A stretch of DNA of 63,270 bases, counting the filler, from Sluysia triapertura (Eukaryota), in NCBI GenBank assembly GCA_046118255.1. It is 4 parts of 4 records of this genome, joined end to end, with 100 filler letters (N's around TTAATTAATTAA, not from the genome) between each part and the next. Parts side by side here need not be neighbours in the genome. Positions count along the whole stretch, not along the records: positions 1 to 20,699 come from JBJNIA010008878.1; 3 more parts are not named here. One strand, given 5' to 3'. How positions within the stretch are numbered: position 1 is the first letter of the stretch; each line of letters starts with the position of its first letter. Positions 1 to 11,576 of the stretch are shown piece after piece. The notes under the pieces are model-generated. The model did no database searches. It saw only the letters and a program-made list of their open reading frames with translations, and had not been told where the DNA came from. The position numbers and the translations under genes were made by a program.

Positions 1-841
1 GTTTGTATTGTCATTTTTATAAAGAAAAATTTGTATTGTTATAATTTATATACTCTGATTGTAGTTTTGATAATATAGCGAATATATTGAGGTTTAGAGT
101 TTATTTAGTTATTGAGTTTTAATTTAATAATTTGGGAAAATAAAAGTATTAAAAGATACAACAAAATAATGTCTTCAAGCTTTTAGATATTATCGCATTA
201 ATTTCATTTTATTCAACTCGATTATTTTTAATCAGGTAACTGATTGACTGAGCTAGATTCAAATATTTTAAAAGATTATTTGCGAGACTGGAATGTTACT
301 TAAGTTTTTCACTACTTTTTTTAGTTGAGAATAATGGAAATTCCATTATTATTTTACTTTATTAAGAAAGTGTTACTTTAAAGTTTTAAAGGTTTTATGT
401 GTTAGTGTTTAGATGTTTTTAATGTTTGTGGAATTGGTTTTGTGATGAGTTATGTATTATTAATTTGTTTATATATATACTTTTAAATAAACCACCACAC
501 ATATCTGTTAATACTGGAAATGATCACCGATTATTATAATCGATATTATAAAAAGAATTTATTTCTAATAAACCAATTTTACGAAATGCATACCAGATTT
601 ATTGCATGTCTAAATCATTTTTAGTTGGTAAACCTCACCACATCAATAATATTCCTCACTGCGTATAGAAAAATGTTAGTATGACTTACATTAGATAATG
701 CAGCAAACATACTAAGGAACATTTCTTATGCGTGAAATCTACTTATAAGCTATTTATGTACTTTTTATATGTATATTGAATGGAATTTTATTTAATAAAT
801 TTTGAGAATACCAAGAGAAATTTAATGCCTTTGGTAATATT

Positions 842-1204
842 GTGATGAACATATTTACAGATTCGAACATTTTCAGTTTCACAACTTGGATACTGAAGAA
901 AAGAAACATAGAAAAATTCGAGTTAGGTTTATTCGCCTTAATTCCACTAGATTTAATTTTTGTGTATGGGCACTTCGTTAACAATTGGATAGCTCTAGGA
1001 AAAGAAAATAGACATTATTGCAAGAATCCATCTCTCAACTAAACGAATGTAACATTTGGACTTTGCTTTAAAGGTACACGGAAAAATTTAAATATTTTAG
1101 AAATACTAAGAAATTTTCATACCTTGATAATATTAATTGTTGCAATATTATTTGCTATTTTTCTCTCTATAGCGATACTTACAATTATTGTAATTCGTCT
1201 CTAA
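842..1204 (+). pseudogene. Possible decayed membrane-protein gene (Cys-Pro-containing segment followed by a C-terminal TM helix)
   Basis: ORF 842-1042 continues in frame past a TAA and over a 27-nt GT-AG intron (1074-1100) into EILRNFHTLIILIVAILFAIFLSIAILTIIVIRL*. The in-frame stop suggests decay; family unclear. Confidence 0.25.
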
Positions 1205-2254
1205 TATGTACAGATATTGTTTAACTTCCAATGATGAATTGGTACATTATATTATCTCACATACTGTCAATACTTTCCTTTACAAAGGACACACTTTAGA
1301 TATACTTTAATATCGTGTATCCTTTTGTAAATTTAAACTTCAACAAATTCATTTTGAAAGGTATTATACTCAGAATATTCAAACCCAAGTGAACCTGATC
1401 GATATTACAACACAATGTTGCATGGTGAATTGATGTACTGAATCACATACTAGGAAACATGTTTTTTACTTGATTGTATTTTGAATATCAATTATTCTTT
1501 CGTTTTCTATGAATTCACTGCAGATATTGAGTCCATAATATTAATATTACACTTCGTAAAATTTTACGAATATTCAATAATTAATATTTAAACAATTATA
1601 ATTTTTCATTAGTGAATTCAGTCTTCGGCAATGAAACTATGAAAATTTTTAATTTCATGCAAAACTAAATTGTTTCTTATGTATAATATTTTTCATAAAA
1701 GTTTATTTTTGTTTCACATTAAGCATAATATTAGAAATTTATTAAACTTAATTTTTAAAATATAGTTACTCTCGTTTTGCTACCAATGTTACTTTTTAGT
1801 TTCATATTTTAAGTTTTTAATGTAAGGCACAAATTTTTCTTGTTGCACTAATTTTTAGTTTTCAGTTAATTTGTTTAGTGTTTTTATGATGCGTAGTTGA
1901 ACGAATATTTGTTTAAAAAATGCTTTTGGATTTTCTGTTGTGCTACATTTGAAATAATAAACTAAATAATCATATGATTTAAATTAAAATAATTATTTAG
2001 TCATTTATATTATTTTTGAATAAAAGTATAACCCTTATATAATTTAAAATTAATGCTATTCTATAAAATTGAAGTGTTCTAGTTAATTCTTTAATTATAT
2101 TTATTCAATAAATTTTAAACACAGTATGCGATACATTAAATGCCATAAAGTCAAAATTTCGAATACGTATACAAATAATAATAATAATAATAGTAATTTC
2201 TTTTTAATGTAAAAATAATAACAATTTCTAAATATATATAAGTGAACTATATAT

Positions 2255-5200
2255 ATGTACATGAGTTCAGAAATTGGACCTACTAATGCTGAAGGTAAAT
2301 TAAATTTTAGCCTTATATATTTTAGAACCTGAATTTTTTTCTAGCATTAATTTAAAACATGATGAAAAAAATAAATATAAATCGTCGCACTTAATCATCA
2401 ATGACAAACAAAAGTCCTTTCAAAAGGCAGCTGACTATCAGTCTATATTAATCATACCTGATGATATTGATAATATGACCGATATCGATGCCGTCTCTGA
2501 TTACTTGTCATTTCAAACATCACTTGCCAAAAATGCAAAAATATGTGATATAAACAGTGAAATAGAAGCTGAGAAAAGTAATGAATCTTCTGTTTTCAAT
2601 TCATTCGAAAAATATTTTAATAAAGGTAAACGTTTAATTTTTCAATAGTTTTTTTAGAAAATAACGATTTTTCGGTGAAGGTTCCAGAATCAGAAACGTC
2701 TGGTTCCCGATATAAAGGTATGCTATCTAACTTAAGAGAAACACTAGAATCGATTCCACCTCCAAGTATTTCTGTCAATACAATAAAAGCAGAGCGGATT
2801 AAGCATCCTGAAAATGAAGATTTTAGTAGTGAAATAATATTAAAATTTATGGATCCAGAAACAACAATTAATGACAGTGTACTACCTAATTGTAAAAGTA
2901 GTTACGAATCAATGACTCCATATTTATCTGAATACAGAATAAAGAAGAAAAGAAATAGAAGAACAAAAGAAGAAATGCTTAGTAATGTTACAGGCCGTAA
3001 ATGTATGGTTTGCAGTGATGTAAGTAGTGGTGTTCATTATGGTGTTGAATCTTGTGAAGGTTGTAAAGGTTTTTTTCGTCGAGCTCTTAGTGATGATATT
3101 AAAGTTCGTATGAAATGCATTGGTGGTGCTAAGACGTGCAATATACAACCGGGTACGCGAAATCGGTGTCAATATTGTCGATTAATAAAGTGCTTAAGAG
3201 TAGGTATGTCTAGAAATGCTGTAAAAATGGGTAGAAGGAAAAGAAAAAACAACTCATCTGATGATGAAAATAGTGAAAAAGGTTGGTCTTAATTTTTATT
3301 TCACATTATTGAATAGAATTCTCAGAAGTCGAGTCAAATTCATTAAAAGAATTACAAGGAGTGCAAATAACAAATCAGTTAATAACAAGCTCGAGTTTAA
3401 GTATCAACGATGATTTGGCTTTAACTGATGAATTAGAAAAAGCTCGAGCTCGAAATGTAGTATTAATGAATAAGAAAAAAGGCAATCCACCAAGTTTTCT
3501 TAGTTCATCTAAACCTGCAAAACATACAATTCAAGAAAATTGTTACATTGAAGAATCAGATATTTTTTTACTAGCTGATGAAGATTGCTCAATATTATCT
3601 GAAACAAAATATGTACAAGATGAAGTTTCACAATCAGGCAAACATAATGACTCAATTCTCATAACATCTATGAATAATCAGTCTCGACAATCTTTAAAAT
3701 CTGCTGCTAATGATAAACAGGTGTGTTTGTTAATAAGTTATTTAATTGTTAACTAAAATCGCAATAGTAATTTTATATTTAAGGTATTGATTAATTGTTT
3801 CTCACAAAAAATATCTGCTTCAAAATGTAACTTTCCCAGCGTGACAAAACCGTTTTTGTATGTGAAATGCTAAAAAGTTTTAGAGTTTTAGATAAAATTA
3901 AACGTTTTTAAAAATAAAATGACATTACCATAATTTAAATAATTTTAATATTCAATTTTCTAAATTATGTGATTGAAATATTGCGCTGAAAAAATTGTGA
4001 AAGTTTCGTTTTATATGCAAGATGTGCAAAGCATGTAAGTTTATGTGGGGTTTTACAAAACGTTTTCTAATAATCAAACCTTTCACGAAATATAAGTGAA
4101 AAATTTATGCAAAAAACAAAATGTATTACAATTAGGCATTAAAAATTTCATTTAAATATCCACTATGGTTTCAATTCGAGAGTTATAATTGTCAAAGCCT
4201 TTCAGTAATTTTGATACAATCTTTCATAAATTTTCAATGTTATTTAAGCTCAGTATCTATGCTCTCTTAACATAAATTAAACTTTAAAAATTCAGAAAAA
4301 AGTTGCAAGATCACAGTGAACAATTCACATGACCATCTTGTAAAAATATGCATCGAAATTTTGACTAATAACTTTAAGTTTGATGGTGTTGTGCGGTTTC
4401 TAGCATAATTCTTTTGAAATAAAATACCAATTATGATTTTTAAAAATTTGAACTGACAAAATCTATAATAATAATAGTAATATATTGACGTATAGTGTGT
4501 TCATATCTACTGCAAAATAAGTACTCAAAAGCGCTTAAAGTAAATCATTCACTATAATATTTCTGAAACAGAACTTTGCCTTTTCCTTAAATATTTCAAA
4601 ATCTTCAAGTAATTTGACATTCTCTGGTAGCTGGTTGTATATTTTTGAAACAGGCGGTATAAAGCCTCTCACCTAGCTTATTATCATTGTGGATTATATA
4701 TAAGCTTATTATGTCTCAGTGAAATATTCATCTTGGTTTCTAAATTTTTTAATTATTTCTAAGATATTCAGAACTTCTCTAATATAAGCGTTTATAAATT
4801 ATTGTTATGATTTTGAATTCTATGTAATTACATGAGATCTTCCCACTTGAAAAATTAGTTTTATTGCTTGATTATTTATTGCAATTTTTTCACTTTTTAT
4901 ATGAAATTGAGTGCAGTATGCCATTGTTAAACTCCATGTTATTAGATATCAATGAATGAACAATTAGTTTAGCTGTAACTTTATTAATATTTGATACAAT
5001 TAATATTTTCTTCCATTTTCATTTTTGAATCCATACACACGAACATTATTAACAGAAATAGTGGCCAGTAATTCCTCTAAATCAGAAGTGGTCAACTAAG
5101 CTAATGATAGAGTCAATAATATCATATTAATATAAAATATTTAAGTAACAATAAAATAATTCAAATTTTGGAAATTAAATTTATATACTTTATAGAATAA

Positions 5201-8200
5201 TTGTTAATTTAGACATTCAAAAGTGTAAAAACTTAATATATCTGTTAAGCGAAACTTTAATATATTTAAACTTTATATATAAAACTGTATTTATACTATC
5301 ACGAAATGTAAGTGAAATTTTATGTTTCGAATCACTAATCAAGTTAAAGACTCATTCGAAACTATAAAAAGGATAAAAAAACGTTTTATTATAGCAATCA
5401 CTATTTTTTACATTTCTATGTTTATAATTTACAATCTTTTACATTTACCTAAGTAAAAACTGTTTTAGTAACTACAATACTAATAATTTAGAATAATTTA
5501 GAGCAAAATTTTTTAATTGAAATATTAAAAATTTAATATTTCAAAAAATCTTGTATATAAAATGAAACAATTCAAAATGTTTTTAATTAGAAAGCGAATA
5601 AAATTCCTTTTAAAGTATTTTTAAATTAAGATAATAAATATTCTTGAAATCATAGATGCTTCATAAAACTAAATTCAATTTTGTTGATTACGAACATTTA
5701 CTATCCACATTATTTGTATAGACCAAATGTTCTAGAAATTCATTATAATTTACGTTTAAAAGTATTCATTTAATTTTGGTAAGGAAATAGCTCAAAATCT
5801 TATTTTTTGGAATAAATTGGATGATAAAAAACTATTAAGTGCAAGAAGATGCCATTTTTGTTTTATCTTGACGATGGATTACATAAGTTATGCAATTGAA
5901 TGATTTTAAAGAATGAATATAAAGTATGCACAGAAGTGTCCTTAGATCAAGGTAAATAGTAATAAGATAGCACTTGTCTGAGAGTCATAACCAAAGTGAG
6001 ACTGGTGCACAAAGGTGATTAAACCGAGTAGATTTTTGGTAATACTCAACAGTATGAATCATATAAATAAGCTTACAGTACCATGCACACCACCGTAAAC
6101 AATCATTGCTTTAGACATCTTGATTCGGACGTTTCTTTATCCAATAGATAAAACAGTGAACTCGATTTTAAAATTTAATGACTTTTACAAACTAGATCGT
6201 ATAAAACCAAAGAATTGTATCTGAATGTCCAATAATTTCAAACGTCGATTGCATTCCAAACTAGGACACAATTAACGTTTTGAAAATTCTGTCTACTTGT
6301 AGTTTTCTAGTAATATAACGGGTTTTTCCGATTGTCCGAATATTGTAATGGGTTAGGTGAGCAATAAAATCGTTTTTCAAAATTTCTCAATAACCTGACA
6401 CTTTCTATTAAGAAGATGATTAGAATTCATTTTTGAAAACTTTTCATACTACTTGCGATGTGAGCGTCTTTAAACAAATTGAAATTGTACATTTATTTTA
6501 TGGTATATATCTGGTTGATAACATATTATTTCAATTTTTCGACCTTTTGAATTTACGGACTTTAGAGGTCTTTCAAGTTAAGAGATTTCAGATTGATTTA
6601 CGATAACATCGTTACTGTTTTGCCAAAATTCGGACAATAATAAGTCAAAATTTATTATGGGATGTTCTGGCATTAAAATATATAAACTGAATAAATTTTT
6701 TTAGGTAGTTGCGCTCAATTACAATTTTTGATATATACCAAACGTATAAAGTGAATCCAAAATAAAATAAAGCCAATCGTAGCTGTGTTGCCAATGAATT
6801 TTAAATCAGTAGTATTCATTGGCTTACATATAACGTGTATACTATCTGAATATGATAATGATGTCACCATTATTACTATTATTGCTATTGCTATTGCTAC
6901 TAACAGTACTATTATTATTACTATTATACCTCCTACTACTAATAATATTTAATTTTACAAATATTATATCTATTGCTATTATTTATTATTAAAATTATAC
7001 TAAATTAACCTTTGGTGTCCGAATGTTAGATATATCTAACATTTAAATTAATGGTCAAAATAGACGAATGTTATATATACCTAACATTTATAAAATTTAA
7101 TTTAATAAAAAAATCGTCTCAAGACAGTAGGATTGTTCATAAAAAATGGTTAAGTTTAAAAAATTGGTTTCAACCACACTGTAGTTTTTATAAATTCGTA
7201 TATTAAATTGTAATTAATGTCAATAATAATTATTATATTTGTTATCAGTATTTCATGTCACTTTTATAAATATGTACGAAATACTGTGTTTCGACAAAAA
7301 TTTTTGAATTAGCACTTTTGAATATTTATGCAAGAGTCGTTACTGCGTAAATTAACATTTTTTAAATGAATTTTTCTGAAATCATATTTAATGATCCATT
7401 TCCTCTTCACATTTAATTTCTTGATTTTGTTTGAGGTTAGTAGAACTAACATTTAAAAACAATTATCACTCATTACGTCGTTGAGAATTTCGATAATTAT
7501 CTTTAAATTTGAGTTTGGGATCATGAGTATTATCATTTATGGACCTAATAAATGACTATTGTATTTTCGCCGTATTTTCTTTTAATTTATACATATTTTA
7601 ATTTTTTTATAAATATTTTAATACATATTTCGCTTTGTTTATGTATGTTTTAAATAATTCCCACTATAAATTGAAAGCTAATGGATAAATATGTTATAAG
7701 TAATTGATTTGGTATGATAATAGTCTAAGTTGAAGAAGAATGTATTTATATTGTAATTGATTTTAATAGCATTTTAAAGTGTTGAATTAGTGATTATAAG
7801 AACTAGAGTGTGCTAAATTTGAAGGTGTCCGCGTTAGTTTTTTTTGTGTGAGTAGCAGTAATAATTTTATTAGTTTTAAACATGTTTTGAAATTTGAAAG
7901 ATCTATAAGATTTAAAAAATAGAAAATCATCAGAATTATGAAAATATATTATATAATTCTGGAAGTTTTATTCCGAAATATTTTTACTTTCGGAAGTAGA
8001 AATAGAAACATTAATAACTTTTTATTCAGATCGAGAAAATACCTATCTCAACTTCTACTTTTGAAAACAGAAAATCTTTCCCTTTGAATTCAACAGTTTA
8101 TATAGAAAATTCTACAAAGAATGAAAAAGGTTCTTCATTATTATAATATGACTGACATGAAAATTCAATATAGATAGTATGAAGATTTCACCATTTAGAA

Positions 8201-10853
8201 AAAGGCTAATTAAAAATGTAACTTCATCTCTTAATTCGAAGCGACAACAATTGCAGCATATCAGTTTGATGGATGATAATAAAATATTGCCTTACAATTC
8301 CAAACAAACCCTATATAAATTTAATGACAAATCTCAAGGAAAAATGAAACTTTTACCTAGTAAGTGATACTTAAAATTAATAACTTCATTTATGTAATGA
8401 GCAATAAATATAGAATTTAAAATAAATAAGTTAAATTTAAAACAAATCCAAATAATGATAAAAGAAAGTTAATTATAATTTTGAATAAATAATTTAAAAT
8501 TTTTTAACTATTGAAAATCTATTTTATTTATAGTTAAAGTTAAATATACTCAAATTAATTTAATAGTTACAATTTTAATATGATGAATGTAACTTAAAGT
8601 TAATTTAATTGTATTTAAACTTTCCGTATGTTACTGAAAAGATTAGAAGTTAGTTCATAATAATTGAAACAAATATTTATAGAAAATTACGCAATTTCTA
8701 TATTATTTAATTTGTCATCGAATTTGAAATTTCAAAAAAAATATTTTTTATATTTCAAGAATATGTATGAAATTAAAGTAACACTTTTTTAACAATTGAT
8801 GTCATACAAAAACATTAACTACTAAAACTTTGTTAAAGAAATTGATGCGTATAATTTTTAAAATTTCTTTATTTATATAATATCAATAGTTTGTTTAAAT
8901 AATTCGACGTTAATAAGAAAAATGAAAGAGTGTTATTACTGTATGTCGTCCGACCATCACTTTAAATGTCATATATGTGGTAAATTGTTATGTGAATATT
9001 GTAGCAATATTCATGACGAAAAATCAATATGTATTATATGTGTTGCGAGTTTAACGAAAGATGAGCAAAAGGTTTGTTAAATAATTACATGCTGCTTAAT
9101 TAATATTTTAGACAAATTTCAAGATTATTAAAGGGTTTAAGAAATTTATTGATTTAAATGATAATATAATAAATTTTAAATCGAGAAAAATAGATATAGA
9201 AAAAATAGATCATGTTCCATTTAGCTCAATTCGTGATAGATTATCAATGTTCATAGTTGATGCTAATCGAATATTAAGAAAAATGGAAGAAACTACAACA
9301 GAAACCGAAATATTCCAAAAAGAAACATTAGTTCCGTATATGGATTTTTTAATTAAACATTGCTTAGCAACATTATGCGGTGTGGATGAAGACGAATCTG
9401 GCATGGATGATACTAGTAGTGCTATTGAAAAAACAGTTTCAAGTGACGAAAAATCAGAAAGTAATATACACAAAAATAATTGCAATAAAGCAGATCATAA
9501 TACAACACAAATCATTGAGTTACAAACAACTGAATTAGATAATACAGACTATGAAAAGAATAAGCATTTAGTTAAGCCACATGTTGATTCAAAATATAAT
9601 CCTAAAAAGTTTTGTGTAGTTTATACTGATGCAATGTCACAATCAAGTAGATTATCGATTAAACCTCGATCATGGGAGACAGGCAAAGCAATAATTAAAG
9701 AAAATATGAAGTATAGAAAAAGGTCCAGTGACCCAAAAAATACACCAGGAACAAGCAATAAAATGCAAAAAATAGGAAATTCTAGTAGCTGTGAATATAT
9801 TGAGAGAAATGACCATAATTGTAATATAAACTTGACAAATTTGTTAAGTTTACGCAAGCCTGTAGTAAGTGATCTTATTAAAGACTTAAATAACAACCAA
9901 TCACCGTGTAAGTCTACGAATAAATCACTTGAAAATAAAGATGATTCACGGAAATCAGATGATATTAATCATACAAGTATAATAAAACAGGTATACGATA
10001 GTGAGACTTCAAAAGAATTCAGAGTATGTGATAGAAAACGTCGTAATTACAATGAACCCGATCATAGCAATCATTCAAATTATGATTGCAGTGATATCAC
10101 ATCCAATTATAGAAAAGATTGATTAACTTGCATCATGGGTTAAAAAGCATATCATTAATTTGAATATAATTTAATTTTTTTTCCTTTAATTTTGTGAATT
10201 TTTTTAAAATATTTTAATTAACAAGTTTATAATGTAATTGTTGTATTTATTAAATTATTGATTGTAATGTTTAGTAATAATTATTCACAAATTCACTGGT
10301 CATAGTTTATAATTTATTTATTCGATAGAGTCAGTTTAATTCACGTACCCGAATTAATTAACCCGAAAAAAATTAATATGTTGATTTAATGTTTATTTTT
10401 AGTGAAACCACTAAAACCTCTTACTCATATATCGAATTTGTGTTTTGTCTCCGAACAAGTTTATAATTTAACAGTTAACATTCAACCAGCATTCAAGGAT
10501 GTCTTTCGGAAACACATTGATATGTTTCAAAAATATACTAAATTACAATTAAATACATATAATGAAAATACATTGAATATTTTATTTGCTGGACAAAATT
10601 GGAAAGTATATTTAAATTTTAATTTTATTAACAGTGATTTAATGTTATAACTTGAAATTTACTTATACTTTGATTTTAGGAAGAAGACTGTGTTAATGTT
10701 GATTTGAAATCACAAACAAGATCTTGGTGGGCATTTCAAACTCGGTTTAACGATATAATTCAAGACATAGTAAAGTTTGCTAAGCGCATTCCCGGCTTTG
10801 CAAATCTTAATTCAGATGATCGTGTAAATTTAGTCAGAAATGGTTGTTTTGAG
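2255..10853 (+). CDS. Nuclear hormone receptor, NR1 family (E75/E78/Rev-erb/HR3-ROR-like); 3' end incomplete
   Basis: Phase-consistent exons: 2255-2294, 2326-2625, 2658-3281, 3317-3720, 8030-8129, 8174-8359, 10403-10605, 10680-10853. C4 DBD with P-box CEGCKG and the NR1-like extension [14 protein letters not shown] helix 3-5 signature [43 protein letters not shown]. Linkage of the middle exons is inferred from splice phase. Confidence 0.88.
3002..3208 (+). other. zf-C4 nuclear receptor DNA-binding domain
   Basis: [27 protein letters not shown]...CIGGAKTC...[17 protein letters not shown], uninterrupted within exon 3. Confidence 0.97.
4465..4903 (-). mobile_element. L2/CR1-clade LINE 3' fragment (copy 1), in a nuclear receptor intron
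   Basis: Aligns by eye with 48185-48643 and 33853-33978. Minus strand encodes [25 protein letters not shown] (ORF2 C-terminus-like), then AAGCGCTTTTGAGTAC..TAGATATGA and a (TAT)n tail. Confidence 0.7.
7005..7088. mobile_element. piggyBac-like terminus with a twice-repeated subterminal palindrome
   Basis: TTAA|CCTTTGGTGTCC followed by the perfect 22-bp palindrome AATGTTAGATATATCTAACATT (7022-7043) and an imperfect second copy (7067-7088). Partner end not found. Confidence 0.45.
8922..10122 (+). CDS. C8 (4x CxxC) zinc-finger protein, ~386 aa; nested gene or alternative exons of the nuclear receptor
   Basis: Exon 8922-9071 ([50 protein letters not shown]), then a 40-nt GT-AG intron (9072-9111), then exon 9112-10122 in frame with ORF 9247-10122 and ending in TGA. 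The frame is also open back to an AG acceptor at 8888-8889. Confidence 0.75.
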
Positions 10854-11509
10854 GTTATTTCACTATTTATATTTTTATATATAACATGAATATATCGACA
10901 AAAAAGTGATTTATTATTTAAGTTCTTTCATTTATTGTTTGTATTTTTATTACGTGCGCATTTTTGAATATTACGCAGCCTTAATTATAAACTGAAAAAA
11001 ACTTAGGTAGTTTATTAAAACTTATACAATATTAACTAATTTTATATTAGCAGAATTTAGCATTTAAATTGTTAGATTTAATATTATCCTGTTAGTCGCG
11101 TTCTCGATCGACCATTAGAATTAAATATGATAGTGTAAAGTAAACTTTTATGTACTGTAAAACTTCTAATTTGTTCAAATTAATAATTATTAGACCCATC
11201 TTGTCTGACTAAGTCATTAAAGAATTAACAGTATCTCACAACTCAATAGAATTAGATCCGGACTTTACTTGAAATAAAAGCTTTATACTTTAACAAAAAC
11301 TGTATTGCGATAGTCATTCCGCCATTCCTTAATTTGTCACAATCAAAAACTAATGGATACTCAAATTCCATTATTCATTACCTCAGATTTTGCATCTGTT
11401 TGCAAGAAGCAGAGGATACACAACATAGAAAATCCCTAAAAAAATTTCATGACATGAAGTACCGCTAGCATAAAAATTTGATCATTGTTTCTGTTTGAAT
11501 TTTTAATGA

Positions 11510-11510
<1 letters not shown>

Positions 11511-11576
<66 letters not shown>
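11511..11576. repeat. (ATT)n microsatellite
   Basis: About 22 perfect ATT units. Confidence 0.97.

Follow-up and report, generated by a model that had tools for sequence, protein, structure and literature searches.

A Probable Nested C8 Zinc-Finger Gene in a Rev-erb/E75-Like Receptor Intron of Sluysia triapertura

Organization of the Locus

The stretch of Sluysia triapertura DNA analyzed here (63,270 nucleotides [nt], filler included; hereafter, the window) carries on contig C8878 the exons of a nuclear receptor gene and, between them on the same strand, a two-exon coding unit (8922-10122) whose product would begin with a zinc finger of eight cysteine ligands (C8 finger). Our analysis suggests that this unit is probably an independent gene nested in receptor intron 8360-10402. 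Two results point this way: its family members elsewhere in the genome are stand-alone genes of the same layout, and processed copies of the receptor mRNA skip it. The original prediction for this locus had allowed for such a nested gene and also for two fused receptor products. In one of these, the finger unit forms the 3' end of a receptor that has a DNA-binding domain (DBD) and no ligand-binding domain (LBD); in the other, the unit is a cassette between the two domains.

The prediction that the unit comprises two exons with their own ATG and stop codon was confirmed. No open frame on either strand of the window is longer than the 336-codon frame of exon 2, whereas the longest open frames in 200 shuffles of the window averaged 94 codons and reached a maximum of 132. 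The probability that 336 codons remain open, calculated from local base composition (stop-codon probability of 0.091), is ~1e-14. Exon 2 is therefore genuine coding sequence rather than a chance frame, in a window that is very AT-rich (~25% GC). Together, exons 1 and 2 form a reading frame of 386 amino acids (50 + 336), joined across a mini-intron with donor AAG/GTTTGT at 9072 and an acceptor TTTTAG ending at 9111, whose TAG is the in-frame stop from which the frame of exon 2 extends. The exon 1 peptide opens with Met-Lys-Glu-Cys and has cysteines at residues 4, 7, 16, 19, 24, 27, 37, and 40, corresponding to a ligand spacing of C-x2-C-x8-C-x2-C-x4-C-x2-C-x9-C-x2-C. Within the genome searched here (a 619-Mb assembly of 263,945 contigs), the DNA of 8890-10122 occurs once.

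A probable 5' leader of the finger gene precedes the ATG. The 14-nt sequence TTTGTTTAAATAAT is found 18 nt before the ATG in the window and 20 nt before the ATG of a paralog on contig C206415, but it lends weak support to a leader because the 14-mer is not rare and recurs in this AT-rich genome. Just 5' of the ATG, window 8884-8904 (CAATAGTTTGTTTAAATAATT) resembles the donor region of exon 1 at 9066-9086 (CAAAAGGTTTGTTAAATAATT), and a resemblance of this type between leader and donor is also present in the C206415 paralog.

The Host Receptor Gene

The placement of the unit, on the same strand as the receptor and between its DBD and LBD exons, was borne out by matches to the Pfam families zf-C4 (7e-25, ~2999-3214) and Hormone_recep (1e-5, in LBD exon 10680-10886), which lie on one strand. 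Solved structures matching the DBD were those of ROR, PPAR, RAR, and Rev-erb, all of which are NR1 receptors. A word search with the DBD exon returned RAR, E75, E78, and NR1D proteins with 50-57% identity across the DBD, and neither a close orthologue nor a self-match was among them. The best solved-structure match to the LBD exon was Rev-erb beta (4.2e-10); the match stops near 10865, and the donor of this exon is not fixed. On the strength of these DBD and LBD matches, the host is classified as an NR1, Rev-erb/E75-like receptor. It resembles Rev-erb/E75 (NR1D-type) receptors in having a zf-C4 DBD with an 11-residue extension and an LBD helix 3-5 exon that is closest to Rev-erb beta, but differs in its long hinge, which is split over four exons with mini-introns of 35 and 44 nt. 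The receptor exon that follows the host intron (10403-10605) possibly includes LBD helix 1, and gave no sequence match to solved LBDs.

The exon chain of the receptor reads ...-3281, 3317-3720, 8030-8129, 8174-8359, 10403-10605, 10680-... (Table 1). All borders are AG/GT, and the successive phases (1, 0, 1, 1, 0) are consistent without the finger unit. Hinge exon 8174-8359 and acceptor 10403 had been placed correctly in the original prediction, as backed by intron-less receptor copies elsewhere in the genome, and exon 8030-8129 is added here. Short introns of 35-44 nt (3282-3316, 8130-8173, and 9072-9111) are used in this genome beside introns of several kb; mini-introns at the paralog loci of the finger gene (L007 1648-1684 and L006 1447-1482) are also very short.

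Table 1. Coordinates of the finger gene, the receptor gene, and the processed receptor copies. Positions are those of the window unless a contig is named; slashes mark exon borders.
Feature	Position	Strand	Description
Receptor DBD exon	2630-3281	+	Donor G/GTTGGT, phase 1; 5' limit not fixed
Receptor mini-intron	3282-3316	+	35 nt; missing from processed copies
Receptor hinge exon	3317-3720	+	Phase 1 in, phase 0 out; 147-codon open frame
Receptor hinge exon, newly added	8030-8129	+	Phase 0 in, phase 1 out
Receptor mini-intron	8130-8173	+	44 nt; after exon 8030-8129
Receptor hinge exon, originally predicted	8174-8359	+	Phase 1 to phase 1; donor GTAAGT
Host intron holding the whole finger gene	8360-10402	+	2,043 nt; GTAAGT...TTTTTAG
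Probable 5' leader of finger gene	8890-8921	+	Carries TTTGTTTAAATAAT, common to the C206415 paralog
Finger gene exon 1, coding part	8922-9071	+	50 codons, ends in phase 0; Met and C8 cross-brace zinc finger
Mini-intron of finger gene	9072-9111	+	40 nt, phase 0; GTTTGT...TTTTAG
Finger gene exon 2	9112-10122	+	336 codons (9112-10119) and stop (10120-10122)
Receptor exon after host intron	10403-10605	+	Phase 1 in, phase 0 out
Open frame with receptor LBD exon	10680-10886	+	Helices 3-5, FAKRIPGF motif; phase-0 acceptor at 10680
Processed receptor copy (DBD end and hinge)	C206173 ~649-1425		Intron-less, degenerate
Processed receptor copy (DBD end and hinge)	C117240, locus 373-3633, ~1086-1789		Intron-less, degenerate

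A Family of Stand-Alone C8-Finger Genes

Six-frame genome searches with each exon identified two further intact loci, on contigs C206415 and C14533. Both have the layout of the window copy: the Met lies three residues before the first Cys, exon 1 is exactly 50 codons long, and a phase-0 mini-intron (37 nt in C206415 and 36 nt in C14533) interrupts the same codon position, followed by a second exon of 106 (C206415) or 355 (C14533) codons and a stop. As proteins the paralogs are 25-31% identical, and all eight cysteines, Met1, and Tyr5 are invariant in the three members. The first ~90 residues of exon 2 also align across the family and have the motif F-x4-L-x-P-x3-F-x2-K-H in common. In BLASTP comparisons, the window finger matched that of C14533 at 2e-9, and the start of the window tail matched those of C14533 and C206415 at 6e-4 and 9e-3, respectively. 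Profile searches with the finger and with the tail start recovered nothing beyond these three loci except a degenerate fragment on contig C194221 that contains a TGA.

When the sequences were read by eye, both paralogs were found to have an in-frame stop 5-8 codons 5' of the ATG, and no plausible acceptor lies between the two. This indicates that the ATG is the ancestral start of the family and not an internal position within an exon. No match to zf-C4 or Hormone_recep was detected on the paralog contigs (10 and 14 kb).

Among the sequence databases, word searches with exon 2 alone and with an alignment of the three tails returned no matches. A HMMER search of 1.84 billion representatives with the finger profile yielded 25 matches at E <= 1e-3, none of which had the whole finger at the N-terminus of a protein and most of which matched as many short stretches. 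Five of these matches were read; one has tandem C2H2 fingers and the other four are other Cys-rich proteins. The nearest match, a protein of 102 amino acids, aligned with profile positions 1-30 only. These searches suggest that the family is restricted to this lineage, having been seen so far in this genome alone. The restriction is provisional, since the databases searched do not hold this genome's own proteins and close relatives are perhaps unsampled. A family of N-terminal C8 fingers that falls outside curated families and has no detected relatives would be a candidate lineage-specific regulator.

Processed Copies of the Receptor mRNA

A genome search with hinge exon 8174-8359 identified two further places, on contigs C117240 and C206173, with 72-76% identity and with stops. 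A blastn map revealed that both carry window segments 3134-3720, 8027-8350, and 10414-10448 side by side. Four receptor introns are gone from these copies (3282-3316, 3721-8029, 8130-8173, and 8360-10402). The two mini-introns (35 nt at 3282-3316 and 44 nt at 8130-8173) are missing from both, with 8129 joined to 8174, and the C206173 join ...AAACAG/ATCGAG... corresponds exactly to 3720/8030. In both copies, exon 8174-8359 continues into the first ~46 nt of exon 10403, at a join of about 8359 to 10403. A genome-wide DNA search detected finger sequence in neither copy and in no other retrocopy. Compared with the receptor mRNA, both copies lack the two ends, and stops and frameshifts divide what is left into short frames. 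Their exon joins identify these loci as processed pseudogene fragments, derived from cDNA of a receptor transcript from which the finger unit had been skipped. Since C206173 and C117240 resemble each other beyond the receptor part, they are counted as one event.

These copies, together with the stand-alone status of the family, favor the first of the products that had been predicted, in which 8359 is spliced to 10403 and the unit is skipped. That hinge exon 8174-8359 is a chance open reading frame (ORF) in a low-copy dispersed repeat was considered and rejected, as the blastn map places flanking receptor exons alongside it. More generally, degenerate processed gene copies can be used as fossil cDNA to confirm exon junctions where RNA data are unavailable. 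Similar motifs were observed at 8345-8359 (TGAAAC..TTTTAC) and at 10403-10426 (TGAAAC..CTCTTAC), and the processed copies have a single copy of this motif.

A Probable Nested Gene and Its Alternatives

If 8922-10122 is an independent gene nested in the receptor intron, which we consider probable, the receptor pre-mRNA would splice 8359 to 10403 and discard the finger unit with the intron. The finger gene would be transcribed from its own start and would end at its own poly(A) site, both of which are putative and backed only indirectly, by stand-alone paralogs that share its start codon. It is one of three intact members, with one fragment, of a small family, and its product has an N-terminal two-zinc C8 finger, a conserved short helical region, and a long, fast-evolving tail with basic clusters. 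The whole gene lies inside one host intron, between receptor exons 8174-8359 and 10403-10605. As in other host/nested gene pairs, a coding unit is contained in a single intron and the flanking host exons are joined in cDNA-derived copies; the pair differs in that both genes are on the same strand and tightly spaced: the ATG lies 562 nt after the host donor, and the next receptor exon begins 280 nt after the stop. The arrangement would thus be a common host/nested gene pair, which corrects the idea of a finger module built into the receptor. Tight same-strand nesting in a 2-kb intron of a Rev-erb/E75-type gene would also make the locus a plausible site of host transcriptional interference or premature polyadenylation.

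Several observations weigh against a nested gene. The 280 nt that follow the stop are a tight fit for a 3' untranslated region and a poly(A) site, and chimeric transcripts can readily arise from genes nested on the same strand. Each paralog contig spans no more than 10-14 kb, and linkage to a receptor farther away is conceivable. The processed receptor copies are old (~70% identity) and mutually dependent, possibly arose before the finger gene entered the intron, and leave room for minor isoforms that join receptor and finger. At the join of 8359 to 10403, moreover, they fall 24 nt (8 codons) short of the prediction; the missing stretch was either lost by slippage in the ancestor of both copies or is a trace left by the origin of the intron.

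The fused products were predicted from splice phases, and the arithmetic was correct on recomputation: exon end 8359 is in phase 1, acceptors 8890 and 10403 both take phase 1, and two donors (GTAAGT at 9908, GTAATT at 10043) lie in phase 1. Such compatibility is at chance level, and nothing else was found in favor of either fused product. In the first, 8359 is spliced to 8890 as an alternative 3' end and translation continues into the finger ORF to the stop at 10122, yielding a protein with DBD, hinge, and C8 finger and no LBD. An AG at 8888-8889, the phase-1 fit, an open 10-codon bridge to the ATG, and the same-strand orientation of unit and receptor are consistent with such a transcript. Intron retention, exonization, and premature polyadenylation of hosts have moreover been reported for host/nested pairs (PMC3192792, PMC11694760). 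However, by a rough estimate, chance alone would produce the phase fit together with an open bridge of 32 nt in about 1 case in 6, and the position corresponding to the acceptor AG reads AA in the leader of C206415, the closest-matching paralog leader. Moreover, the paralogs start at the same Met with stops upstream, and the processed receptor copies join 8359 to 10403, with no retrocopy containing finger sequence. We consider this product unlikely. It is likewise improbable that a nested gene is in addition captured by the receptor pre-mRNA through the 8359 to 8890 junction, giving a regulated protein with DBD, hinge, and C8 finger that lacks an LBD; if such capture were true, the resulting receptor would be truncated, possibly dominant negative, and equipped with a new interaction module.

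The unit might instead be a decaying or silent, untranscribed family duplicate lying passively within the intron. The degenerate family fragment on C194221 and the poor conservation of the tail are in keeping with this. Yet a 336-codon open frame in DNA of 25% GC decays fast in the absence of selection, and no damage is seen in the start codon, the eight zinc ligands, or either splice site of the mini-intron, making a silent duplicate improbable.

Alternatively, the unit may have arrived as an insertion that created intron 8360-10402, rather than having entered an existing intron. The motif TGAAAC..CT.TTAC flanks the intron on both sides in the window (TGAAAC at 8345-8350 and at 10403-10408) and is found once in the processed copies, which are 24 nt shorter at the join, as would be expected from such intron gain. 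However, the copies lack every intron and hence are uninformative as to whether this one existed beforehand; loss of 24 nt by slippage between GAAAC and AAAAC, in an ancestor that the copies share, accounts for the same observations; and no terminal inverted repeats were found. Intron gain is accordingly regarded as very unlikely.

The least probable of the splicing alternatives is the in-frame cassette, in which 8359 is spliced to 8890 and the unit is exited at 9907 or 10042 to 10403, giving a protein with DBD, finger, and LBD. Its phases are compatible and the GTAAGT at 9908 is a consensus donor, but the donors at 9908 and 10043 do not stand out by phase: they are among 21 phase-1 sites in the 45 GT dinucleotides of exon 2, and ~0.4 GTAAGT per kb are expected from composition (estimate). 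Furthermore, the frame stays open for 70 codons beyond the 9908 donor (P ~0.001 by chance), which implies selection for read-through and suggests that translation normally runs to 10122. The paralogs end in stops and are not linked to a receptor, and the processed copies are without the unit. We view this product as extremely unlikely and, more broadly, the stand-alone paralogs and the finger-free processed receptor copies speak against a receptor with a built-in finger module. Transposon cargo, which the original prediction had tied to high copy number and element termini, was rejected given that the DNA of the unit is single copy, the paralogs are only 25-31% identical, and neither terminal repeats nor target duplications were detected, the repeat search around the unit having returned only AT-rich, low-complexity pairs.

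Fold and Character of the Finger Protein

Pfam matches to the finger were all below threshold (zf-C3HC4_3, E of 0.027; zf-RING_2, E of 0.026; zf-B_box, E of 0.044), including that to the ANCHR-like_BBOX family (PF22586), which matched the C206415 copy (E of 0.0045) better than the window copy (E of 0.26). An AlphaFold2 (AF2) model of the finger, built from a three-sequence alignment, had a predicted local distance difference test (pLDDT) value of 75, with one of the five models confident, and comprised short strands and a C-terminal helix at residues 38-48. Foldseek ranked FYVE domains first (3t7l and 1vfy), with template modeling scores for the query (TMq) of 0.72-0.80 and E > 0.1. With VIA-align, the top fingers (Z of 5-6) were those of RIM, RUFY1, ALFY, melanophilin, ZFYVE19, Slp4, and Hrs. 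The best fold match was 2cjs_C (Z of 6.2, root-mean-square deviation of 1.6, 45 residues aligned), followed by 2yw8, 6w9n, 1wfk, and 1dvp (Z ~5). Z values of 5-6 indicate a common cross-brace fold only, and not family membership. Shape matches in the ESM Atlas included clusters with zf-B_box in 14-28% of members and FYVE-type clusters (CARP-type E3 ligases and RUFY4). Collectively, the ligand spacing, the weak Pfam matches, and the fold matches point to a two-zinc cross-brace finger of FYVE/B-box-like type that is not a canonical RING.

The finger has the features of the FYVE fold, namely eight cysteines, a C-x2-C-x4-C-x2-C core, a C-terminal helix, and a cross-brace. It resembles FYVE-type fingers, including those of the Rab effectors RIM, rabphilin, melanophilin, and Slp4 and of CARP2, in its CxxC...CxxC-x4-CxxC...CxxC arrangement with a C-terminal helix, and its profile aligns with the core of the RUFY1 FYVE domain. 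In contrast to FYVE domains, it starts at residue 4 and has no WxxD, and its last loop is shorter (9-10 residues). The R(R/K)HHCR motif of FYVE domains is not conserved; the corresponding residues are DHHFKCH in the window copy and NVKFECE and DNLLNCD in the paralogs. The RVC motif is only partial, with the members reading SICIIC, NLCFVC, and SRCIVC. The finger did not reach the threshold of any Pfam FYVE family. Because the lipid-binding motifs of FYVE are absent or not conserved, binding of phosphatidylinositol 3-phosphate (PI3P) is not expected.

The likeness to type 1 B-boxes lies in the first six ligands, which fit C-x2-C-x7-12-C-x2-C-x4-C-x2-C, but a conserved CxxC takes the place of the terminal His ligands of B-box1, and His31 is present in the window copy only. 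The best B-box score (PF00643 or PF22586) was 17.5 bits, against a gathering score of 27. With RING (C3HC4) domains, the finger shares the cross-brace, the eight ligands, and the weak zf-C3HC4_3 and zf-RING_2 matches. It differs from them in that the second ligand pair is CxxC (C16-x2-C19) and not C-x-H, and in that ligands 4 and 5 are separated by four residues (C19-x4-C24) and not by two or three. No His is conserved across the three family members, and the RING scores fell short of the Pfam gathering scores (zf-C3HC4_3, 14.7 versus 27 bits; zf-RING_2, 15.2 versus 27.3 bits).

The original prediction had described the finger as RING/FYVE/B-box-like. The FYVE and B-box part of this description is supported by AF2, Foldseek, and VIA-align, while the RING part is not supported, since the finger has no Cys-x-His pair. 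The proposed structural check of the 8922-9071 peptide gave the same division, with FYVE domains ranked first and RING not supported. The further suggestion of a ubiquitin-ligase-like module is opposed by the ligand spacing, the sub-threshold RING scores, and the FYVE-type fold matches. There is no basis for assigning either E3-ligase or PI3P-binding activity to the finger.

The start of exon 2 (~90 residues) is predicted to form a helical hairpin, at a pLDDT of 51 that is too low for a fold search, and Pfam returned nothing for exon 2 at E <= 1. An ESM Atlas feature match (0.93, from only 114 shared features) of the tail start to a PAP_assoc-type helical domain was treated as noise, Pfam being blank. 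The remaining 230 residues of exon 2 are rich in Ser, Lys, Asn, and Asp, are not conserved between paralogs, and include the basic clusters KYRKR and RKRR; this tail is probably disordered and fast evolving. A likely role of the protein is that of a zinc-finger adaptor for protein interactions, possibly in the nucleus.

Other Features of the Receptor Region and the Paralog Contigs

Segments of two receptor introns (window 7603-7843 and 8390-8590) match several other contigs with 72-86% identity over 50-240 nt and are probably dispersed repeats. On C194221, an ORF on the minus strand (2086-2319) encodes a transmembrane stretch followed by KCGFFKR and adjoins the degenerate family fragment; by eye, it resembles the C-terminal exon of an integrin alpha chain. 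On C206415, an ORF at 5860-6105, ~2 kb downstream of the short paralog, encodes the motif FTTLDLQNGYRQI, which is presumably reverse-transcriptase-like, as in retroelements of the Ty3/gypsy type (by eye). On C14533, an 80-amino-acid ORF on the minus strand (7942-8184) encodes a hydrophobic stretch and begins like a signal peptide. Its end lies ~120 nt upstream of the paralog ATG on the same strand, and it is either a separate small gene or a chance frame. Finally, a perfect (ATT)22 microsatellite is present at 11511-11576 of the window, downstream of the LBD helix 3-5 exon and within the receptor region.

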